Of a stretch of DNA of 64,000 nucleotides, positions 2,228 to 42,119 are shown piece by piece (within the stretch, counting starts at the first letter, position 1; the number at the start of each line of letters is the position of its first letter). The notes beneath the pieces are model-generated. The model was not told the origin of the DNA, did not search any database, and saw only the letters and a program-made list of their open reading frames with translations. The stretch comes from Vicugna vicugna (Eukaryota). Both the position numbers and the translations under genes were made by a program. Location: positions 2,947,576 through 3,011,575 of the forward strand of contig MU057887.1 in assembly GCA_013265495.1 (NCBI GenBank), given 5' to 3'.

Positions 2228-3340
2228 CATACATGTATTTAAAGTAAACTTTTATATTTTGCAATTGTAGAGGCACACACAGCTGCAAGAAAACATATGG
2301 AGGGATTCCACGAACCCTCCACCCGGTTCCCCCGTGACAACATCCTGCAGAACCACAGGGTGTCACAGCCCGGAAGCTGACACAGATGCAGGCAAGGTGC
2401 AGGACATGCCCCACCCCCCAGGGAGCCCTCCTGCCGCCTGTTACAGCCGCAGCCACGTCTGTCGCTCCTCCAGGCCCTGCAACCTCCCCTCTGTCCTCCA
2501 CGTCTGCACCGTTGTCGTTTCAAGGCTGTTACATGCTTGGCACCACCCTCAGGAAGTAACCCTGAGGGTTGACGGTCTTCACGCGGCCTGATTCCCTGGA
2601 GCGTCTCCCAGGTCGTGCGTGTCGAGGGCTTGTTCCTTCTCGCTGCTGAGTGCTTGGCCCACCGGCCACCTGCCGGCAGGTGACTGGGTTAGCGTCCTGC
2701 CTGACGATTGCAGGAAAGGCTGCTGTGACCCCTCTGGCACAGGCCTCCCTGTGACCCGCGCTCCCTTTGCCTGAGGTCGCACGGCGGTGGCGCGGGCCAG
2801 CTGGTGGTGGCAGGGCCCCTGGCGCAGCGGCGCGCTGCCCGCGGGTAGGGAGGCCACGCTGTCCTGCACCCGCTCCAGGGTTTTCTCCGCCCGGCTTCGT
2901 GGATTTGAACCATTTTCGTGGATGGGTGGTGATAGTTCGTGGAGGTTTTAACGTGCTTTTCCCTCACGGCTGATGAACCTGAGTGCCTCTGAGGGCCCTT
3001 CCGTGTGTTTATCTACCCTCCACACGTCGTCTTTGTTGAGACGTCTTTGCCCATCGTCACGCCCGTTATTTCATTACTTTTCTCGGTTGAGTTCTGAGAG
3101 CTCTCTCCGTGCTCCAGGGGCTGGCCCTGCGTCAGACGTGCAGTCTGCAAGTCCCTCCGCCAGTCTTGACTTGATTTCCGTCCTCCCACCCTACACAGAG
3201 CAAACGTCCGTAATTTTGATGGGGTCCAGTTTACCACTGTCGCCCTCAATGTCCACGCTCCAGGGTCAAGTCCGAGATCTTTGCCCCGCCCTGGAGTCAA
3301 GACTCTTGTCTGTTTCTAGTATTTTTATAAATAGCAAGGC
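2228..3340 (-). mobile_element. Ancient L1 (L1MC/L1MD-type) 3' end fossil, GC-shifted
   Basis: Colinear with the recalled antisense L1M 3'UTR/ORF2-end consensus over ~1.1 kb (e.g. ...caattgtagaggcacacacagctgcaagaaaa..., ...gagttctgagagctctctcc..., ...taattttgatggggtccagttta...). Confidence 0.8.
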
Positions 3341-3384
3341 TAATTTAGAGTTATGAAAATATTAATATTGATGTTAAATATGAT

Positions 3385-3480
3385 TTTTTCTTTTTTTAAT
3401 TGAAGTGTAGTCAGTTTACAATGTTGTGTGAACTTCTGCATAATGTACAACGTAATATTTCAGTCACACAAATAAAACAC
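3385..3480 (-). mobile_element. Cetartiodactyl/camelid L1 extreme 3' tail
   Basis: T-run followed by aattgaagtgtagtcagtttacaatgttgtgt, the antisense end of young artiodactyl L1s. Confidence 0.7.
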
Positions 3481-5229
3481 AATTTTAATAAGGAAACAGC
3501 CTCCGAGGTAAGTCGTGCTGTTGGTACAGTGTGAGCTCTTGTGAGGCGCCCCTTCCAGAGCCTGGTGAGTGACTTCCTGCCGTCCTGCCAGCTGACGGGG
3601 GAGGTGACCTGGCTGGACTGGGAGCCAGTGGGTGGCCTGGGACCCCCGCCAATCCCCCACCGGGCTCTGGTGAGCTGCAGGACCCTGGACAAGACTGCCC
3701 CACCACACATCCCATGGACAAGCACTAACCAAAGTACAAGTCCAAGGCCGCGTGTGGGAAGCCCTTCACCTGTGCCCAGTGTGGACTAGGCTCCGAGCGT
3801 GGCCTCGGTGAGCCCCAGCCTGCCTGCGAGGAGGGACCAGCGTCACGCCCGTTTGCAGATGTGGGCACCGGGCACAGAGGCGAGGAGGAAAGAGGCGGGG
3901 GAACTGGGGCTCAAAGCCGGCTCTGACTTTGACCCTCTCGTCCCAACCTGGGGAGCACAGGGCAGGTTTGCACACTGGGGTCAGAGGGCTAATCAACCTG
4001 TCCAACCTGCAGCACGAGCAGACGAAGTCGCCTGGAGGACGTGCAGGCTGTCAGGGGCCTCTAGGCCGGAGGCAGAAACACACCTGAGACGTGGATGCAT
4101 CCGTGGTCACGTTGTCCACGCGGTGAGGCTGCAGCCCAGGATGCAGGCCAGGCGGACAGACTGAACCCGGCGGCCACGTCCTTCCCGTGCCCCAAGGAAG
4201 GCAGATGTCCCTGCCTTGTGGGGACCCCAAGCCGGCACAAAGCCGGCTCAGCAGTGGGCATCCTAGCTTTGGGGGAGCCGCCTCATCTCTGTCTGCCCTC
4301 TTGGGGTCACCGCATCTCCCTTGCTCCCTGGGCAGGCGGTGCTGGCATCTCTGCAGCCCACCATGCACAGAGCCTGTCTGTTTAGGGCGAGTTCCTGGGA
4401 TCCGTCTGTTCATCACCAAGTCCCGTGGCCCTCGTTGCTAATTCTTTAATGAAAGAGCGCATTTATGAAATCTGACAACATCAGGGGAGGTTTGTAGACG
4501 CTGTCCATTAGGCCTTTCGCGGGGAATAGTTAATGACAGGCAGGCTCATTGGAATCGAGGTTTCATCTAATACCAGTTTCGGGAGAGTCAGTTGCAGGGT
4601 TATTTCTGCAGATGAAATTAGCTCTGTTTGGAGGTCGCCTCCGGTAGCTGGATTGAGAGAGACAGATTTACAACAGCTAACGCTGTCAACGAGATGCTGA
4701 TTCCACTCCACAAATAAGGGTATTACTTTAAAAGAGAAGGTTTTTCTTTATCAACACCCTCCGTCAACCCCATGCCTTTGTTGAAGGACAGAGCGTATTG
4801 GCCAATTATCAGAACGCGCACGGCCGTTCGGAACCTTCTCCTCGGGATTGTTCAGCAGGCAAGGAGGCGAATTCCTCTGCTGCAGCCCCGACTCCTGCTC
4901 AGGAGAGACTTGGCACGTGGGATCCCCGCAGGGCGCCCCCCAGAAAAGCCAAGGTTGGACCAACCTCTCCTCTCCAATCCTTGTTTCTGAGTGTCATTTG
5001 TTTTTTCTTTTCTTGTTCCTTATTTTCTGGAACTTGATTGGCTTGGGGGTGAGCAGGTGAAGGGTTAGGGTTAGGTGCCAAGCCCCCAGGGCAGCACCGG
5101 GCCACAGGGAGGGCGCCCGCCCACCCAGTGCCACCCCTGCATTCCAGCCTTCACACCCACAGGCCCCCGGGCCCCCAGCTTCATGCCCCGTGCAGCCCCC
5201 ACCAGTGACTCTCTGAGTTTGGCTCCTGG

Positions 5230-12258: not shown

Positions 12259-12397
12259 NNNNNNNNNNNNNNNNNNNNNNNNNNNNNNNNNNNNNNNNNN
12301 NNNNNNNNNNNNNNNNNNNNNNNNNNNNNNNNNNNNNNNNNNNNNNNNNNNNNNNNNNNNNNNNNNNNNNNNNNNNNNNNNNNNNNNNNNNNNNNNN
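12259..12397. other. Assembly gap (139 N)
   Basis: Run of n; the right flank is the (TA)n/T-rich tail of an L1 3' end. Confidence 0.99.
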
Positions 12398-12690
12398 ATA
12401 TATATATATTTTTTGTTTGTTTGTTTCAGATTCCTTTTCATTATAGGTCGCTGCAAGGTATTGAATGCAGCTCCCTGTGCTGCACAGCAGGTCCTTGCTG
12501 TCTGTCTGTTTCATGTACAACAGTGTGTGTCTGTTGATGCCAAGCCCCCGGGTTACCCCTCTCCCCTTTCCCCTTTGGTGAGCACAGGTCGCTCTCTGTG
12601 TCTGTGAGTCTACTTCTGTTCTGCAAACAAGTTCACTTATGTTACATTCTAGATTCCACGTGTCAGCGATGTCACGCGGTATTCGGCAAG
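12398..12690 (-). mobile_element. Cetartiodactyl L1 3' end
   Basis: ttttcattataggtcgctgcaaggtattgaatgcagctccctgtgctgcacagcaggtccttgctg...tgtctgtgagtctacttctgttctgcaaacaagttcac...ttctagattccacgtgtcagcgat. Confidence 0.85.
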
Positions 12691-13479: not shown

Positions 13480-13960
13480 GCGGCGTCCCGGGACGTGAGA
13501 GCGACACGGGGCGGGGGGGACGCCACCAATTTAAAGCCAGATTTCTTCATTTAGGAAAGCAAGTTCGTAAAAAAAATCCCTTATACTCAAGGTGAAGGAA
13601 ATCTCATGTGAACAGAAGTTCGGGAAATGACGAGCCGCTCGGGAGGCAGCATCTGACCGCGCGGCCCGGCCCACCGCGAGCTGGGCGGCGAGCCGGCGAC
13701 GCCCGGACGGAGCGGGGAGACTCGGGACAGGCGGGCCATGCGGGCCGGGCCCTGGTCGGTGCGCGCGCAGGGGCAGCGCCGAGGCTAAACAGCCTTGGCG
13801 ATTACGGACCCCAAAGTCCCGCCAGCGGAAGTAAGGGAAGCACGCCGCCGCGGCGGGGGCCGGGGGCGCGCGCAGAGCCGTCAGCAGCGCGCCCGCACGG
13901 CCGCACGCAGCAGCTCGGGCCATCCGCGCTCTTGTCCTTTCCGCTGCAAGGGGTCTTCAG
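13480..13960. promoter_or_regulatory. CpG island with promoter-type motifs (no associated gene recognised)
   Basis: Dense CpG; GC box GGGGCGGGG 13508-13516, CCAAT 13526-13530, TTTAAA 13530-13535, ETS-type CGGAAGT 13826-13832. Confidence 0.55.
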
Positions 13961-35199: not shown

Positions 35200-36060
35200 C
35201 TCATTTTCCTTCTCACAGCTCTGAGCGCTGGACGGGCCCCCTCCCAGTGCGGCGCATCGCCGCCCGCGCTGAAGGGCGCGGGCCACCTCCTCCTCGGCTC
35301 TGGGGCTCTGTCCCTGAGCCCCCCTGTGGCCCCCGGGCCCCCTCCTCGGCTCTCAGGACTCTGTCCCTGAGCGCCCCTGCGGTCCCCGGGCCCCCGGGCC
35401 CCCTCCTCGGCTCTGGGGCTCTGTCCCTGAGCCCCCCTGTGGCCCCCGGGCCCCCTCCTCGGCTCTCAGGACTCTGTCCCTGAGCGCCCCTGCGGTCCCC
35501 GGGCCCCCGGGCCCCCTCCTCGGCTCTGGGGCTCTGTCCCTGAGCCCCCCTGTGGCCCCCGGGCCCCCTCCTCGGCTCTCGGGGCTCTGTCCCTGAGCCC
35601 CCCTGCGGCGTCTGGGCCCCCGGGCCCCGGGCCTGTGCGCTCAGGGCCGGCCTCCCCTTCCTCCGGGCAGCGTTTCCGTCCGGCCGGTGTTACTGCTGCG
35701 GTGCGCGTCGCAATGCGCTAACGAAGTGTGAGTTTCTGGGAGCTTTTCCTGGTGGTGGTGGTTTCTGTTCAGATTTTTGAAAGTTTCTCCTTTGGCTAGG
35801 TTTGAATTGTGCTTTTCGCGCGTTTTCCCCACTTCCGCTAAGGGGCGGGTTTGCTGGCAACGCCGGCCGCGGGGTGGCCGTCGGGGGTGCAGCCGGGTCC
35901 GCGCCTGACGCGCGGGTGTGCGTCCTCGCGTCTCGGCGCGCCAAGCCGCCCCGGAGCTCGTCCGCTGCGCGAAGCCTCTCAGCAGCCGCCCCGGGCCTCG
36001 TCCGCTCTCCCTGCCGCCCGCTTCTCGCTTCGCCGACTGCTGGCCACGCCTTCACTGCTC
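35200..36060. promoter_or_regulatory. CpG island (VNTR plus L1-derived part); possible 5' splice donor near 35727
   Basis: Very high CpG density; GC box ggggcggg near 35840; GTGAGT donor-like hexamer after ...aacgaagt. Confidence 0.5.
35286..35625. repeat. GC-rich VNTR with 113-bp higher-order unit (52-bp A + 61-bp B; order A-B-A-B-A-A')
   Basis: ggctctggggctctgtccctgag recurs at 35296, 35409 and 35522 (113-bp spacing), alternating with the ggctctcaggactctgtccctgagcg variant. Confidence 0.9.
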
Positions 36061-36547
36061 CCTTCCTTCCAACTGTTTTGGTTCAGTTTGCTTTACCCCA
36101 TAACCAGCTTCTTATGACCAGAATTATGTACAATTGCATTCAGCGCTTCTTCTCTTTAAACCTAAACCTTCAGCTCCAAAACCCCCTGTAAGGACTAAGC
36201 GCCCACCCCTCATTTCTACGTGTTTGTGCTCGTTACTCTTCAGCGTGACTCTCTCCGCTATTCCTTGCAGTTTCCCTCTCTGACCCATGAGCTATTTGGA
36301 TGTGATTTATTTGAGATTATATATATGTGTGTGTGTGTTGTGTGTTTTTATGTAACAGTTCTATCACTGATTTTAATTCCGTTATGATTAGAAAATATGA
36401 TTTGCATGATTTCAGCCTTTTGCATTTTATTGAGATTTGTTTTAAGGCTCAATTTCTGTTTTTTGAAAATGGTTCTGTGAGTGCTTGGAAAGAGTGAAGA
36501 TTCAAGTTTTGGCTGGCAGTGGTCTGGAAATGCACATTAGTTTAAGT

Positions 36548-36815
36548 GGAAGAGGAGGGTGGAGGGATAAACTGGGAGCTCAGGATTTGCAGATCCTAAC
36601 CACTCTACATAAAACAGATAAACAGCAAGGCCCTACCGTGCAGCACAGGGAACTATATTCAAGACCATGTAATAGCCTATAATGAAAAAGAACATGAAAA
36701 GGAATGTGTGTGTGTGTGTGTGTGTGTAGCTGAATGACTCTGTGGTGCACCAGAAATTAACACAACGTTGTAAACTGATTATACTTCAATTAAAAAAAAA
36801 AATAAAAAAATAAAT
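36548..36815 (+). mobile_element. Cetartiodactyl L1 3' end inserted into the older L1
   Basis: gggataaactgggagctcaggatttgcagat...aaacagataaacagcaaggccctaccgtgcagcacagggaactatattcaa...(tg)n...ttgtaaactgattatacttcaatt plus a poly-A tail. Confidence 0.9.
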
Positions 36816-37151
36816 GGGTTGACACTGTGGTCACATCTTTGATACCTCACTAATTTTATTGTTACTGTTTTTACGTACATGATCTACTAATTACTGAGAG
36901 AAGACCATTAAAACCTCCCAGTGTAATCGTGCACCAATCTTCCCTTTTAATCCTGCAGATTTTTTGCTTCGAGTGTTTGAAGCACTTTTATGTGTGTGCA
37001 TACACTTGAGAAATTGTTACTGTTTGAATGAACGTCTCTTCATGTTATACAATGTCCCTCTTTCTATCTGCTACATCGTCTTATCTCAGCCCTCTGTGCC
37101 TGGTGTTAGTATAGTACGGAGTGTTTCCATTGTGTATCTTCTACTTGTTAC

Positions 37152-37315
37152 TTTTTTATCTTTTTCTAATTGAAGTATAGTTGATTTACAACATTATATC
37201 AGTTCCAGGTGTCCAGCATCTTGACTCACTATTTTTATAGGTTACAGTCCATCTGAAGTTGTTAAAAATACCAGCTTCGTGCCCTGCGTGGTGCAATGTG
37301 TCCTTGTTCCATATT
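37152..37315 (-). mobile_element. Cetartiodactyl L1 3' tail
   Basis: ttttctaattgaagtatagttgatttacaacattatatcagttccaggtgtccagc. Confidence 0.75.
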
Positions 37316-37599
37316 CACTTGTCTTTGCTTTTAACTCGCCTAGTTCTTTGTATTTAAATTGTATCTTTTATAAACAGCAAGTAACTGAGTCTGGGTTTTT
37401 GTCCACTCTGTCCCTGACTTTTAATGGGAGCATTTAGTTCATTTATAGTTAAAGGAATATTTGATTTGATTTAAGTCAACTATCGTTCTATTTGTTTTCA
37501 ATTTGTCCCCACTATTCTTTGTTTCTTTCTCCTGCCTTATTTTGGATTAATTGAATATATTTTACTATTTATTTTCCTTTTTTAATGGCTTATTTTTGT

Positions 37600-39200
37600 T
37601 TTGCCTGATGAAGTATGTTTTATATGTGCAGTAAGATGCACCAATTTAAAGCATATGGATTTTGTCAACACTACCACCACCACAGTCAAGATACATAACG
37701 TTTCTATTAACCCAAAAGTCTCTCCCACCCTTGGCAGTCAATTCACTCTCTCACCCCGGCCCCCTATTAATGCTGATCTGATTTCTATCAGCGTAGTTAT
37801 GAGGTTTCTAGAAGTTTATATAAACTGAAGCATTCAGTGTTGCTGGTTCACATCTCGCTTCCTTCACGCAGCATGATGGTGCTGAGGCTCAGCCATGCTG
37901 TCATGTCACTGTCTTACTCTGTTTTATTGCGGACCGGTTCCCACAGCGCAGACACACCACTGTGCGCTCATTCATGCACCACCTGATGAGCGTTTGGGTT
38001 CTTTGCGGTTTCTGGCTATTCGGATGAAGATGAGCTGCATGAATATTCACGCACAAGTCTTTGAGTGGGCATATGTTTTTCACTTTTCTCCGAGAAAAAT
38101 GTCTAGGATTGGAAACAGGGGGTCAGGCAGAAGTGTACACTGAGCTTTATAAAACCTGCTGAACTGTTTTGCACAGCGTCTGTCCCACTTTGCATTCCCA
38201 CCAGCAACACATGAAAACTCCACCTGCTCCCTGTCCTCAGCAGCACTGGGTGTTTTCAGTCTTTTAAACGTTCACCATTCTAGTGGGTGTGCAGTGGTGT
38301 CTCATCGTGGTTTTAATTTGCATTCTTCTAAAGGCTAACGATGCTGAGCGCCTTTTCATATGCTTATTAACCACATGTTTATCCTCCTTGGTAAAGCATC
38401 CGTTCAAATATCGGCCCATTTCTCAAATGTGTTGTTTGTCATCTTATTCCTGAGTTGTGAGAGTTCTCTGTGTATTCATGATACAAGCCCATTTTGTATG
38501 TTTTGCAACTTTTTCCTCCCAGTCCATGATGTGCCTTTTCATCTTCTTGTGCACTTTAAAGAGCAAACGCTGTAATTTTGATAGTCTCATTTAGAAGTTT
38601 TAAAAACTATGTAGTTCAAGTTTTTACTGCCTTATTAAGAAATCTTTACTGAGCACAAGGCCAGTAAGTGTTTCTCTTATGTTTTTTCCAGAACATCCAC
38701 TGTTTCATCACTTCAGTTTAGTCCTCTTTCCTATTTCGAGTTATCTTTTCTATACAGTGAAGACTGCACTTCACTGTTTTTGCATATAGGTATGTATTCT
38801 TGGTGGACTTTGTTGACAATATTGTCCTTTCCCAATGGATTATCTTAGCACCTTTGTCAAAAAATCAATTAATCAAATTTCTGTGGGTCAGTTTCTAGAC
38901 CTTCTATTCAGTTCCACTAATCTGTCTGCCGGTCTTTACCTCTCTGATTCTGTTGCTGCTTTGTGATGCGTCTTGAGAGCAGATGGTGTCAGTCTCAATA
39001 CTTTATTCTTCTTTTTCAAAATTATTTCAACTCCTATAGTTCCTTTGCATGTCAACATCAACTTCAGAATAAGCTTATTAATTTCTACAGAACAAAAATT
39101 GGGACAGTGACTGAGATGTCATTAAATCTTTGTCAGTTTATAGAGAACTCATAATTTGACAGTAATTTTTGTCCAGCTCATGGTCGTGATTTATTTCTCC
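37600..39200 (-). mobile_element. L1MB/MC-type 3' UTR and ORF2 end
   Basis: Continuous antisense L1 3' sequence (gtggtgtctcatcgtggttttaatttgcatt, ttttgtcaaaaaatcaatt, gatggtgtcagtctc, cagaataagctt). Confidence 0.85.
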
Positions 39201-39215
39201 ACTTACTCAGCTGGT

Positions 39216-39610
39216 TGTGGTAGCACAGTAATGCCCCCACCCAGATGGCCACGCCTTAATCTCCAGAAACTTTCAAAATGTTCGCTTACCTGGCAAAAGG
39301 GACTCTGTAGATGTGATTCAGACAAGGTCCTTGAGAAGAGATTACCCTGAATTCTCCAGAGGGGTTCTGGCCAATCAAGTAAATCTTAAAATTCAGAGAC
39401 CCTTCCCCAGCTGTGGTCAGAGGGAGATGCGGTCATTGGAAGAACAGTTAGAGAGAAGTAACTTCACTGGCTTTGAAAATGGGGGAAGGGGCCACGAGCC
39501 AAGGAAATAGGTGGCCTCTAGGAGCTGGAAAAAGCCAGAGAACAGGTTTTTGTCTAGCGTCTCCACAGAGGAGAGCAGCCCTGATGGCACGTGGGTTTAA
39601 GTACTGAGCG
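39216..39610 (+). mobile_element. MLT1D-type solo LTR inserted in L1
   Basis: Starts tgtggtag...; tggcaaaagggactctgtagatgtgatt; gccacgagccaaggaa...gcctctaggagctggaaaaagc. Confidence 0.85.
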
Positions 39611-39885
39611 CACTTCAGGCATTGTACACAGCTGTGGTAAACACACTCTACTTAAATTTCAACTTTCAGTGATTTGTTTCTAGCATTTAGAAATACAGTG
39701 GGTTTTTGTAAATTCATCTTAAACCCAGAAACACTACTAAACTCATTTATTTGTTAAAAAGATTTTTATAGATTTTTTTTGGAATTTTCTACAGAGATGA
39801 TCATGTCGCCTGCAGATGAAGACAGTTGTATTTCTTTCATTCCAACATGCAAGCCTTTCATTTCTTTTCTTGCCTTACTGAGCTG
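39610..39885 (-). mobile_element. L1 ORF2 continuation
   Basis: aaacactactaaactcatttatt...ggaattttctacagagatgatcatgtcgcctgcagatgaagacagttgtatttctttc. Confidence 0.75.
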
Positions 39886-40130
39886 GCGAGGGCCCGCAGG
39901 ACACCAGCCATGGCGGGCCACCTCTCGAGACGCCGTCTCTCTGGGGCTGACCCTTCCGCCTCCTCCTTCCCACGTGGTCACGCGGGCCCACCTGGATGAT
40001 CACACATAATCCCCCTGCATCAAGGTGTTTCACTTAATCGCACTTGCAAAGCCATTGTCAGGTGAGGAGACCCCCGTGGGCCCTGGCACTGGGGCATGGG
40101 CGTGTTTGGGTGTCATTACTCTGCCTGTCT
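39885..40130 (-). mobile_element. MLT1 LTR fragment
   Basis: gggccccacctggatgatcacacataatccccc...cacttaatcgcacttgcaaagcc...ggggcatgggcgtgtttggg. Confidence 0.65.
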
Positions 40131-42119
40131 TGTTGGTGATGCGGACGCGCTGAGACCCCCTGAGCTGGGGCCAAGGCCTCCATTAGACGCAGCCCGGCTG
40201 CGATTCGCAGCTCATGCCCATTCCCCCTCTTTTGTCAGGATGATGCTCTGGGAGCTCAGGCTGAGGTTCAAAATCCTTGTTGCACCTGTGGATTCAACTC
40301 TAGCAGGTGGCTGGGAGGAGACATCGTACAAAACGTGTTCAGCTCACAACGGAAAACAAAACGACAGCGTGAGAACATCACCATGTTTCATTCCCAGTGA
40401 AGCGGTGGGTCTAGGTGTTGAGCGTCAGTGACAGCTGATGTCAAATGTCAAAAAAAAAAAACAAAACCAAAACCACAGATGCCAGGCACCTCCTGGTGGG
40501 AGAAGCAGCCGTCCTGCCCGGGGGTGGCCCCTGAGCCCAGGGAAGCCTCAGACTCCCTGGAGATGCAGAGGACAGGGGAGCACGCAGCCCCACACCACAA
40601 GGGTGAAATCAGCCGACTCCCGGTGATGGCAGGCCCTGCTGACTGAGCAGCGCGGCTCCTACAGCCGACAAACTGTAAGGAGGGCATCAGACGAGAGGCA
40701 GGCTGATTAAAAGAGGCATGAAAGGCATCACATGAGAGAAAAGACCGAGCAAGCCTTCGCATCCAGGGATGCAGACTTCACCTGTAAAGCCATACGGCAA
40801 GACGAGGACGTGGTTCCTCCAAAGTCAGGGCCCCTGGGAGCACCGTGCCGCTTCCAGACAGGAAGCAGCCGGGAGCCCAGCTTGGAGGGAGATGAGCCTC
40901 CACCGTGAATGTGTTACCTCTGAGGGGCTGGGTGTTCAAGTGGGGGTGCTGGACAAGGGCCTGGATTCACATGTGTCCACACGTGGTTTGGAGAGAGTCT
41001 GGCCCCAGCCTGACCCCGCAGAGAACCTTGCAGCCTGAACTGTACCTGCAAAGCCCCTTCGTACCAAGAGCCAGGGTCCTGGAGGTGAGCATGGGGGTAA
41101 CCCCCAGACCTCCCAGCCTCGCATCAGGGCGGGGCCCTCTGCCCACCGTGACCGGTGGGCGCACAGGCTCGTCGGGGGTGAGTGGTCTGCACCTGGCAGC
41201 ACTGCCCACAGGGGCCTCGGTCGCAGGTGAAGTCAGAGGATGTCAGAGAAGAGGCCGTCAGAACTGGACGGGGTTGACATCAGTGACCTGAAGGGAGCAG
41301 TAGGCACCAGAGCCCCTGGTGTCCTGGGGGTGGGTATGGAGACCTTGCCCTTGTGGGGGAGTTTTCTGCAAGGGAGTAAAGAAATCCAGAGACTGGAAGG
41401 TAGGTCCCCCTCCCTCACCCACGCCTGCTCACGCTCGTGGCAATGATCCGCTCAGCTCCTGCCACCGTGTTCGGACACCTCGTGGATTCCCGACCCTCTT
41501 CCTCTTGCCGGGCACCCCAGCCTCCCCGCAGGCACCCTCCATCTCACTGCACGGGGTCCCGGAAGTGGATCTTAAATCAGAGAGCTCACGTTTCCAAAGT
41601 CAGCCCTGGGAACCGAGGAAGCGCCTGAGTGGGAAGCCCCGGGTTCCCTCCTCGCCCTGCCTGAAGCAGCCCCGCCTCTCAGGAGGCGTCTCCGCCCTGT
41701 GCACGCTGTCCGGTCCTGGCACGCTGGCCTCCTGGTCCCAGAAAGGGGGTGCCGTCCCCCAGCACACATTGCCGCCCTGTGCACGCTGTCCGGAGGCTGG
41801 AGGAGAAAGTGGTCAGAGACGCAGCTGGACGCCTCCCCTGACGCCTCGCCTCGCCCCAGGGCCCCACTCTTTCCTATCAAAGTGTCCAGCTGAAGCCCAG
41901 TCTCAGGAGCCGTGTGGACAAAGCTGCAGTCAGGCTCCCGGAGAAGCCCGCCCGTGCAGGACCCTCTCCTGGGCCCTGGCAGGGGGCTCGGGCTCGGTTC
42001 TAATGCCCTTTGTAGGTTACGATAGAAGTCCATTTCTTTTACTCTGATGGAATTAAGTAACCGTACACTCCTTTCCAAGACAGACGCAGCTTCAGAATAG
42101 GACTGTGTCCTGGAACCAG

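Follow-up and report, generated by a model that had tools for sequence, protein, structure and literature searches.

The window, i.e., the whole 64-kb stretch of DNA that was analyzed, has a GC content of 60–67% nearly throughout, and its observed/expected ratio (o/e) of CpG mostly lies between 0.3 and 0.7, with values of about 0.5 outside the island considered here. This GC-rich sequence is broken by an AT-rich block at approximately 36100–39900, and a CpG island lies at the left edge of the block. The block consists of two separate antisense LINE-1 (L1) fossils arranged in tandem. Directly to the left of the island is a minisatellite with a 113-bp unit, which is not L1-like. The coordinates of these features are collected in Table 1.

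Table 1. Features of the CpG island, the adjoining minisatellite, and the L1 copies of the AT-rich block (positions within the window).
Feature	Position	Strand	Basis or characteristics
Minisatellite, three tandem copies of a 113-bp unit, 93–99% identical	35286..35624	.	GC 0.79, CpG o/e 0.43
CpG island as delimited in the preliminary description	35630..36110	.	Base composition
Left end of the island, holding GTGAGT (35728–35733)	35630..35739	.	Without detectable L1 signal
L1 ORF2-derived stretch beyond the core, GC 0.47	35740..35845	-	About ORF2 residues 427–459, nt 3050–3145 of reference L012
GC-rich patch, 76 nt, GC about 0.80	35845..35920	.	Without detectable L1 homology; 116 nt of L1 expected
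GC-rich L1 ORF2-derived stretch	35921..36066	-	About ORF2 residues 336–389 (linker after the endonuclease), nt 2777–2935 of L012
First fossil, ORF2 linker and C-terminal end of the endonuclease	36067..36540	-	tblastn, nhmmer, protein profile, register tests, substitution counts
Younger L1 3' tail, A-run ending near 36815	36541..36867	+	Inserted in the first fossil; gap between profile matches
First fossil, endonuclease part of ORF2	36868..37460	-	DNA profile matches
Second antisense L1, reverse transcriptase to C-terminus and 3' end	37620..39918	-	tblastn E 1e-24, nhmmer E 4e-67

CpG Island and Its Surroundings

The presence of a CpG island at 35630–36110, proposed in a preliminary description of this DNA, was confirmed by its base composition. 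The island is 481 bp long, has a GC content of 0.647, contains 52 CpG at an o/e of 1.04, and passes the criteria of Gardiner-Garden and Frommer (at least 200 bp, GC of at least 0.5, and CpG o/e of at least 0.6). In its core (35800–36060), the GC content is 0.72 and the CpG o/e is 1.15. TpG and CpA have o/e values of 0.91 and 1.07, respectively, over the entire island, and within it the values for both range from 0.86 to 1.07, without an excess. In the GC-rich DNA flanking the island on both sides, the CpG o/e is 0.43–0.52 and that of TpG/CpA is 1.26–1.43, a combination that is the mark of methylated-CpG decay. Of the CpG-island-like stretches in the 64 kb, two stand out as strongest, namely this island and another near 13501, which is of equal strength (13501–13900; o/e 1.14, 51 CpG per 400 bp, and GC 0.67).

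The unit length of the minisatellite is not a multiple of three, and TGA is present in all of its plus-strand frames. A direct repeat of 23 nt with an identity of 91% and a spacing of 40 nt was observed in the island core (35944–35966 and 35984–36006). A GC-rich motif that arose by chance or convergence, rather than a duplication, may account for it, since the in-register L1 signal described below still comes from both copies. There was no sign of an assembly artifact, and the sole run of N in the window (139 N at 12259–12397) is located far from the island.

A GC box, GGGGCGGG, occupies positions 35842–35849. The GTGAGT that had been noticed near 35727 is indeed present to the left of the box, at 35728–35733. 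On our reading of the sequence, only one codon separates the plus-strand ATG at 35713 from a stop. The GC box and the GTGAGT hint at a promoter at the level of motifs only. The search for coding exons near the island by means of Pfam and codon-position GC revealed none that was convincing, and neither Rfam families nor tRNAs were matched in its vicinity. A search for orthologous translations of the open reading frames of the island also found none. Judged by these sequence searches, the island looks like an orphan island.

Antisense L1 Copies in the AT-Rich Block

The preliminary description had recognized an antisense L1 ORF2 fossil to the right of the island. With independent L1 references, this proved correct. 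The ORF2 DNA profile matched the minus strand of the first fossil at 37458–37329 (E 5e-10), 37070–36868 (E 1e-5), and 36540–36371 (E 5e-8), i.e., in ORF2 order. In addition, when six-frame pieces of the whole window were compared with a protein profile built from 25 mammalian ORF2 N-halves, a match was obtained at 36351–36536 on the minus strand (E 1e-6). The ORF2 start of this fossil is located near 37460, and all matches, from 37460 down to 35784, lie on the minus strand and keep the order of ORF2. The linker is not covered by any other L1 copy in the 64-kb window, and the endonuclease piece had no match in PDB at E 1.

Besides the younger 3' tail inserted in the first fossil, an inverted fragment of a young L1 3' tail interrupts its endonuclease part at approximately 37148–37211. 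The window contains this younger tail four times, as copies or fragments, namely at 36541–36815, 37148–37211, 12424–12567, and 3384–3438, which indicates later retrotransposition into and around the old fossils.

The second L1 abuts the first fossil. It contains a non-L1 insert of about 440 bp (approximately 39210–39650), located between nt 4030 and 4156 (both approximate) of the reference ORF2, which is probably another interspersed repeat. The second L1 may extend to about 40300, as weak in-register 50-nt windows (rank 1–6) were observed at 39976–40025 and 40251–40300.

L1 Homology inside the Island

The first fossil was described previously as continuing colinearly to the left into the island. 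The comparison with L1 references showed that this holds for two parts of the island, 35921–36066 and 35740–35845, both of which are in register with the fossil, and revealed no L1 signal in 35845–35920 and 35630–35739. The island core is thus bracketed by L1 on both sides, with 35740–35845 in register on the far side. By alignment, about 60% of 35630–36110 is demonstrably L1-derived.

One line of evidence came from the subregion 35921–36027, which has a GC content of 0.78 and a CpG o/e of 1.28. Under each of three substitution models, its gapped in-register score exceeded those of all 607 wrong registers tried on the two strands (z 4.4–4.6), and none of 500 dinucleotide shuffles reached it. 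Against GC-matched decoys from the window, the score was reached by 0 of 500 under two models that take account of changes from A/T to G/C (W>S), and by 32 of 500 under the neutral model; therefore, significance relative to genomic decoys depends on W>S-aware scoring. When only the non-human rows of the reference alignment were used, none of 548 wrong registers reached the score. Successive 50-nt windows from 36095 to 35921 chose one diagonal, on which the register of the flank was continued within 8 nt. The split at 35921 was picked after inspection of this 50-nt window scan. With strictly ungapped windows of 75–146 nt, the expected diagonal was not chosen, and the comparison of the whole core with a single cattle-type reference (L012) was not significant. 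The agreement of purines and pyrimidines over the whole core was 0.81 versus 0.69–0.73, and this value was reached by 0–2 of 251–400 nulls, which is of modest significance.

On the far side of the core, 35740–35845 scored higher against L012 in its predicted register than in any other of 1386 registers (z about 4). An independent, weak nhmmer match (35817–35784) lay at the predicted place; the position reached by extrapolation from the endonuclease is 43 nt away. This stretch overlaps the GC box and the second of two short sequences that the preliminary description had aligned with L1 without gaps. Both sequences, at 36027–36066 and 35807–35862, were located as claimed, and the alignments were reproduced, with 19–21 of 40 and 24–29 of 56 identities, respectively. 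The longer one was best placed among about 7500 offsets on both strands at the same ORF2 coordinate in four of seven independent references, and in a fifth after a shift of 5 nt; its best placements had 26–29 identities, two of them being ties, and the chance mean was 13.3 (sd 3.5). For the shorter one, 20–21 identities were counted at the expected coordinate, which was the top match in two of the seven references (chance mean 9, sd 2.7), and a hand count against L012 gave 19.

Between the two L1-derived stretches, 35845–35920 had z values of -0.1 to -0.8 against wrong registers, i.e., no L1 signal. A net shortening of 40–45 nt relative to L1 is located in this patch, which is either saturated L1 or replaced sequence. 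To the left of 35740, including the minisatellite, no signal was obtained for a continuation of the L1 (the part of the element 3' of about ORF2 residue 460). The 136-aa stop-free piece of the island had no match in PDB at E 10, in Pfam, or with the ORF2 protein profile.

Substitution Pattern

W>S changes and changes from G/C to A/T (S>W) were counted against the majority base of confidently conserved alignment columns, so that the ancestral states reflect young L1 lineages in other mammals rather than the subfamily consensus of the fossil itself. In the bodies of both L1s, the per-site rates were 0.14–0.34 for W>S and 0.16–0.58 for S>W, and equilibrium GC was 0.24–0.63, mostly 0.3–0.5. Toward the island, equilibrium GC climbed from 0.24–0.50 in the L1 body to 0.54 in the bin at 36120, 0.71 at 36000, and 0.96 at 35880, and was 0.76 at 35760. 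Over 36067–36540, with growing distance from the island, the W>S excess declines and the GC content drops from 0.5 to 0.3.

The ratio of W>S to S>W was 55:13 in the right flank, versus 71:58 in the body (p 3e-4), and 22:3 in the left flank (p 2e-3). The bodies of the two L1s gave 71:58 and 213:151, and the contrasts of the island-adjacent sequence had p values of 3e-4 to 3e-3. Counting along the element, which the preliminary description had put forward as a check, thus placed the W>S excess next to the island, relative to the L1 bodies. In the aligned core, ancestral G/C was kept at 39 of 46 sites and ancestral A/T at 38 of 122. The change was graded over about 300 bp, and such a gradual change fits in-place rewriting rather than the insertion of foreign DNA.

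The stretch 35921–36066 now has 22 CpG, compared with one in the L1 majority sequence, and it is supported by the alignment that almost all of its CpGs are new relative to L1. Two claims made earlier, that AT-rich, CpG-poor L1 ORF2 was rewritten in the W>S direction and that this rewriting yielded many CpGs, were therefore substantiated, the former for the CpG-dense core. The idea that the GC box is a product of the same rewriting fared poorly: by our reading of the sequence, only two of its eight bases are identical with the L1 antisense sequence, and several of the differences are transversions. Many of the present CpGs align to ancestral AA or TA, so that two changes were needed, including transversions. 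Both observations make the base-level alignment of the core uncertain.

At the right edge of the second L1 (39840–39960), W>S:S>W was 28:6, with an equilibrium GC of 0.75 and a CpG o/e of about 0.47. This edge gained GC without retention of CpG, which means that GC enrichment and CpG retention are separable.

Origin of the Island

The proposition that most of the CpG-dense part of the island is decayed antisense L1 ORF2, in which A/T was locally replaced by G/C, largely holds on the evidence of the alignments. We propose the following history. An old 5'-truncated L1 on the minus strand runs from about 37600 to the left, where it meets GC-rich non-L1 DNA. In a short ORF2 stretch, the linker between the endonuclease and the reverse transcriptase (about residues 336–459), changes from A/T to G/C were fixed far more often than the reverse, and the new CpGs in it escaped loss. 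The outcome is a CpG island of 0.4–0.5 kb, the densest part of which is L1 coding sequence rewritten in place. The likeliest driver would be GC-biased gene conversion (gBGC) at a meiotic recombination hotspot that was long-lived and lay in a patch hypomethylated in the germ line. The graded W>S excess would stem from conversion tracts a few hundred base pairs long, and the absence of methylation would have led to a CpG o/e of about 1 in the island versus about 0.5 elsewhere in the GC-rich region. As a whole, we regard this explanation, i.e., rewriting of the L1 linker by gBGC at a persistent hotspot in a hypomethylated patch, as probable. We infer gBGC, hypomethylation, and both the existence and the persistence of the hotspot from the sequence pattern alone. 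When a W>S bias in GC-rich DNA is local and graded, it bears the signature of gBGC around a hotspot, and a CpG o/e of about 1 without an excess of TpG/CpA points to a lack of germline methylation.

The preliminary description presented the island as created de novo. This is too strong as worded, since detectable L1 ends near 35740 and the island abuts non-L1 GC-rich DNA and the minisatellite. The island or the hotspot may therefore have nucleated at the junction and spread into the L1. In its full form, this alternative holds that the island or hotspot is older than the L1 or independent of it, that it nucleated in the GC-rich DNA on the left, in the minisatellite, or at the junction, that it spread a few hundred base pairs into the L1, and that it may be common to many mammals rather than lineage-specific or newly made. 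The extension of the island beyond the end of detectable L1 to 35630, the adjoining GC-rich minisatellite, and the 60–67% GC of the entire window all speak for it, and the W>S gradient is as expected of spread from a fixed center. However, the CpG-dense maximum (o/e 1.15–1.28) sits in the L1-derived part, and the DNA to the left, with its low CpG o/e (0.43–0.52) and excess of TpG, resembles methylated DNA. An older island is thus unlikely in our judgment, though with an appreciable chance of being correct. We consider very improbable the suggestion that the GC-rich core is foreign DNA, placed between L1 pieces by insertion, local duplication, or growth of the minisatellite, and that its likeness to L1 arose by chance. 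The score of 35921–36027, better than every wrong register and every shuffle, the choice of one diagonal by successive 50-nt windows with the flank register kept within 8 nt, and the gradual climb in GC without a sharp boundary speak against a foreign core, whereas the patch 35845–35920 without L1 signal, the 23-nt direct repeat with its 40-nt spacing, the 45-nt deviation in length from L1, and the lack of significance of the whole core against a single reference would agree with it.

Processes other than gBGC could also have rewritten the L1 sequence, namely selection for a new regulatory element through the gain of CpGs and a GC box, or a mutational bias confined to this locality, for example from mutagenesis that accompanies recombination or transcription in hypomethylated chromatin. 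Such processes would be in line with the origin of the GC box by changes beyond simple transitions, with the many CpGs that need two changes, and with the retention of CpGs in the island, unlike at the other W>S-shifted L1 edge. We nevertheless find them rather improbable, as no transcript, exon, or RNA family was found nearby, and the smooth 300-bp gradient together with a second W>S-shifted L1 edge 4 kb away favors a regional recombination-linked process. As regards the gBGC explanation itself, a self-reinforcing hotspot process is plausible given the sequence pattern. We give little credence to the stronger reading, in which a PRDM9-independent, self-sustaining hotspot would have turned the L1 sequence into a lineage-specific, germline-unmethylated island that now acts as a promoter or enhancer. 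If this reading were true, the locus would be a regulatory element born purely from recombination-driven fixation bias.

Comparison with Known Systems

Old transposon copies in GC-rich, high-recombination DNA become GC-richer. In 2003, Arndt, Petrov and Hwa reportedly followed W>S drift in GC-rich regions with transposon fossils as neutral markers, and Alu copies are said to have served Webster et al. in the same way in 2005. As in those studies, substitutions were inferred here against the family sequence. The differences are that the drift at this locus is extreme (equilibrium GC up to about 0.9), is confined to about 350 bp, and is accompanied by the retention of CpGs, whereas the rest of the same element stays at a GC content of 0.3–0.4. 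The promoter in the L1 5' UTR carries a native CpG island, which is inherited with the element and decays with age. The island described here resembles it in being a CpG island within L1 sequence; however, it is located in ORF2, the matching stretch of which has about one CpG, and would have been gained after insertion.

The gain of islands through gBGC is already documented genome-wide. The 35,464 islands gained in dogs were connected with gBGC acting at stable hotspots where the DNA is unmethylated (PMC4350167). gBGC was also proposed as one route by which orphan islands are gained, and phastBias tracts overlap many of these islands (PMC11170920). Across many placentals, peaks of equilibrium GC at islands are read as hotspots independent of PRDM9 (10.1101/2023.11.17.567540). 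The present locus is a well-resolved single case, not a new phenomenon. Like the dog GC peaks (Berglund et al., 2014, PMC4350167; Auton et al., 2013, PMC3861134), it is short, rich in GC and CpG, strongly biased toward W>S substitutions, free of CpG depletion, and non-genic, as those peaks mostly are; with the orphan CpG islands studied for their turnover in mammals (Genome Biol 2024, PMC11170920), it shares the character of a non-promoter island with no nearby exon. Unlike at the dog GC peaks at stable PRDM9-independent hotspots, the ancestral sequence here is known from a transposon family, and the rewriting of one locus can be read; on the other hand, the island is known here from its sequence.

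The value of the locus lies in its starting sequence, which can be inferred from the L1 family, so that the conversion of a CpG-poor, A-rich fossil into a CpG island can be followed base by base. Although a single case illustrates an accepted mechanism rather than a new one, a genome-wide collection of transposon-anchored islands could make outgroups unnecessary for estimating how strong, far-reaching, and lasting gBGC is, and could show how often such islands acquire regulatory activity.

L1 Reference Sequences

The references were L1 ORF2 DNA sequences of cattle, bat, rodent, pangolin, dog, and horse type. The starting point, L012, is a metagenome contig of 9.5 kb with a nearly intact young L1 that comprises ORF1 and a stop-free N-terminal half of ORF2 of 545 residues; since its ORF2 shares 96% identity with a Bos protein, it was classified as cattle-type. 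When this ORF2 half served as the query of a word search, ORF2 proteins from many mammals were obtained. The DNA references beyond L012 included four loci (pangolin, bat, rodent, and a dog-type contig) and a contig close to horse proteins. As a stand-in for the ancestral L1, we used the column frequencies of a 12-row alignment of ORF2 DNA, which combined these with additional contigs. None of the 12 rows was of primate type, as checked with a part of the protein P0106 as a probe, and the key register test was repeated with only those rows whose non-human origin was known or inferred. The human-gut metagenome loci L014, L015, L019, L021, L036, and L038 were taken for human and left out, as were the primate-looking proteins P0106 (a part of which served as the probe only), P0109, and P0146.

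A large representative search with a 51-aa open reading frame of the second L1 as a query returned short C-terminal fragments only, on contigs of about 1 kb, and the viral collection searched for an L1 reference gave no match. Two candidates were rejected. L010 is a bacterial contig with a chance match at its end, and P0009 is a tandemly repetitive predicted protein of 1831 residues and not L1; its eight stretches that scored with the L1 C-terminal query are an artifact of composition or repeats. Short contigs with fragments of mammalian L1 ORF2 (L004–L009 and L011) were also observed in published assemblies of bacterial isolates; in one of them, NZ_BMGI01000017.1 (Sinisalibacter lacisalsi), the L1 is 91% identical to a cattle-type fragment. 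Such L1-bearing contigs are evidently contaminants.
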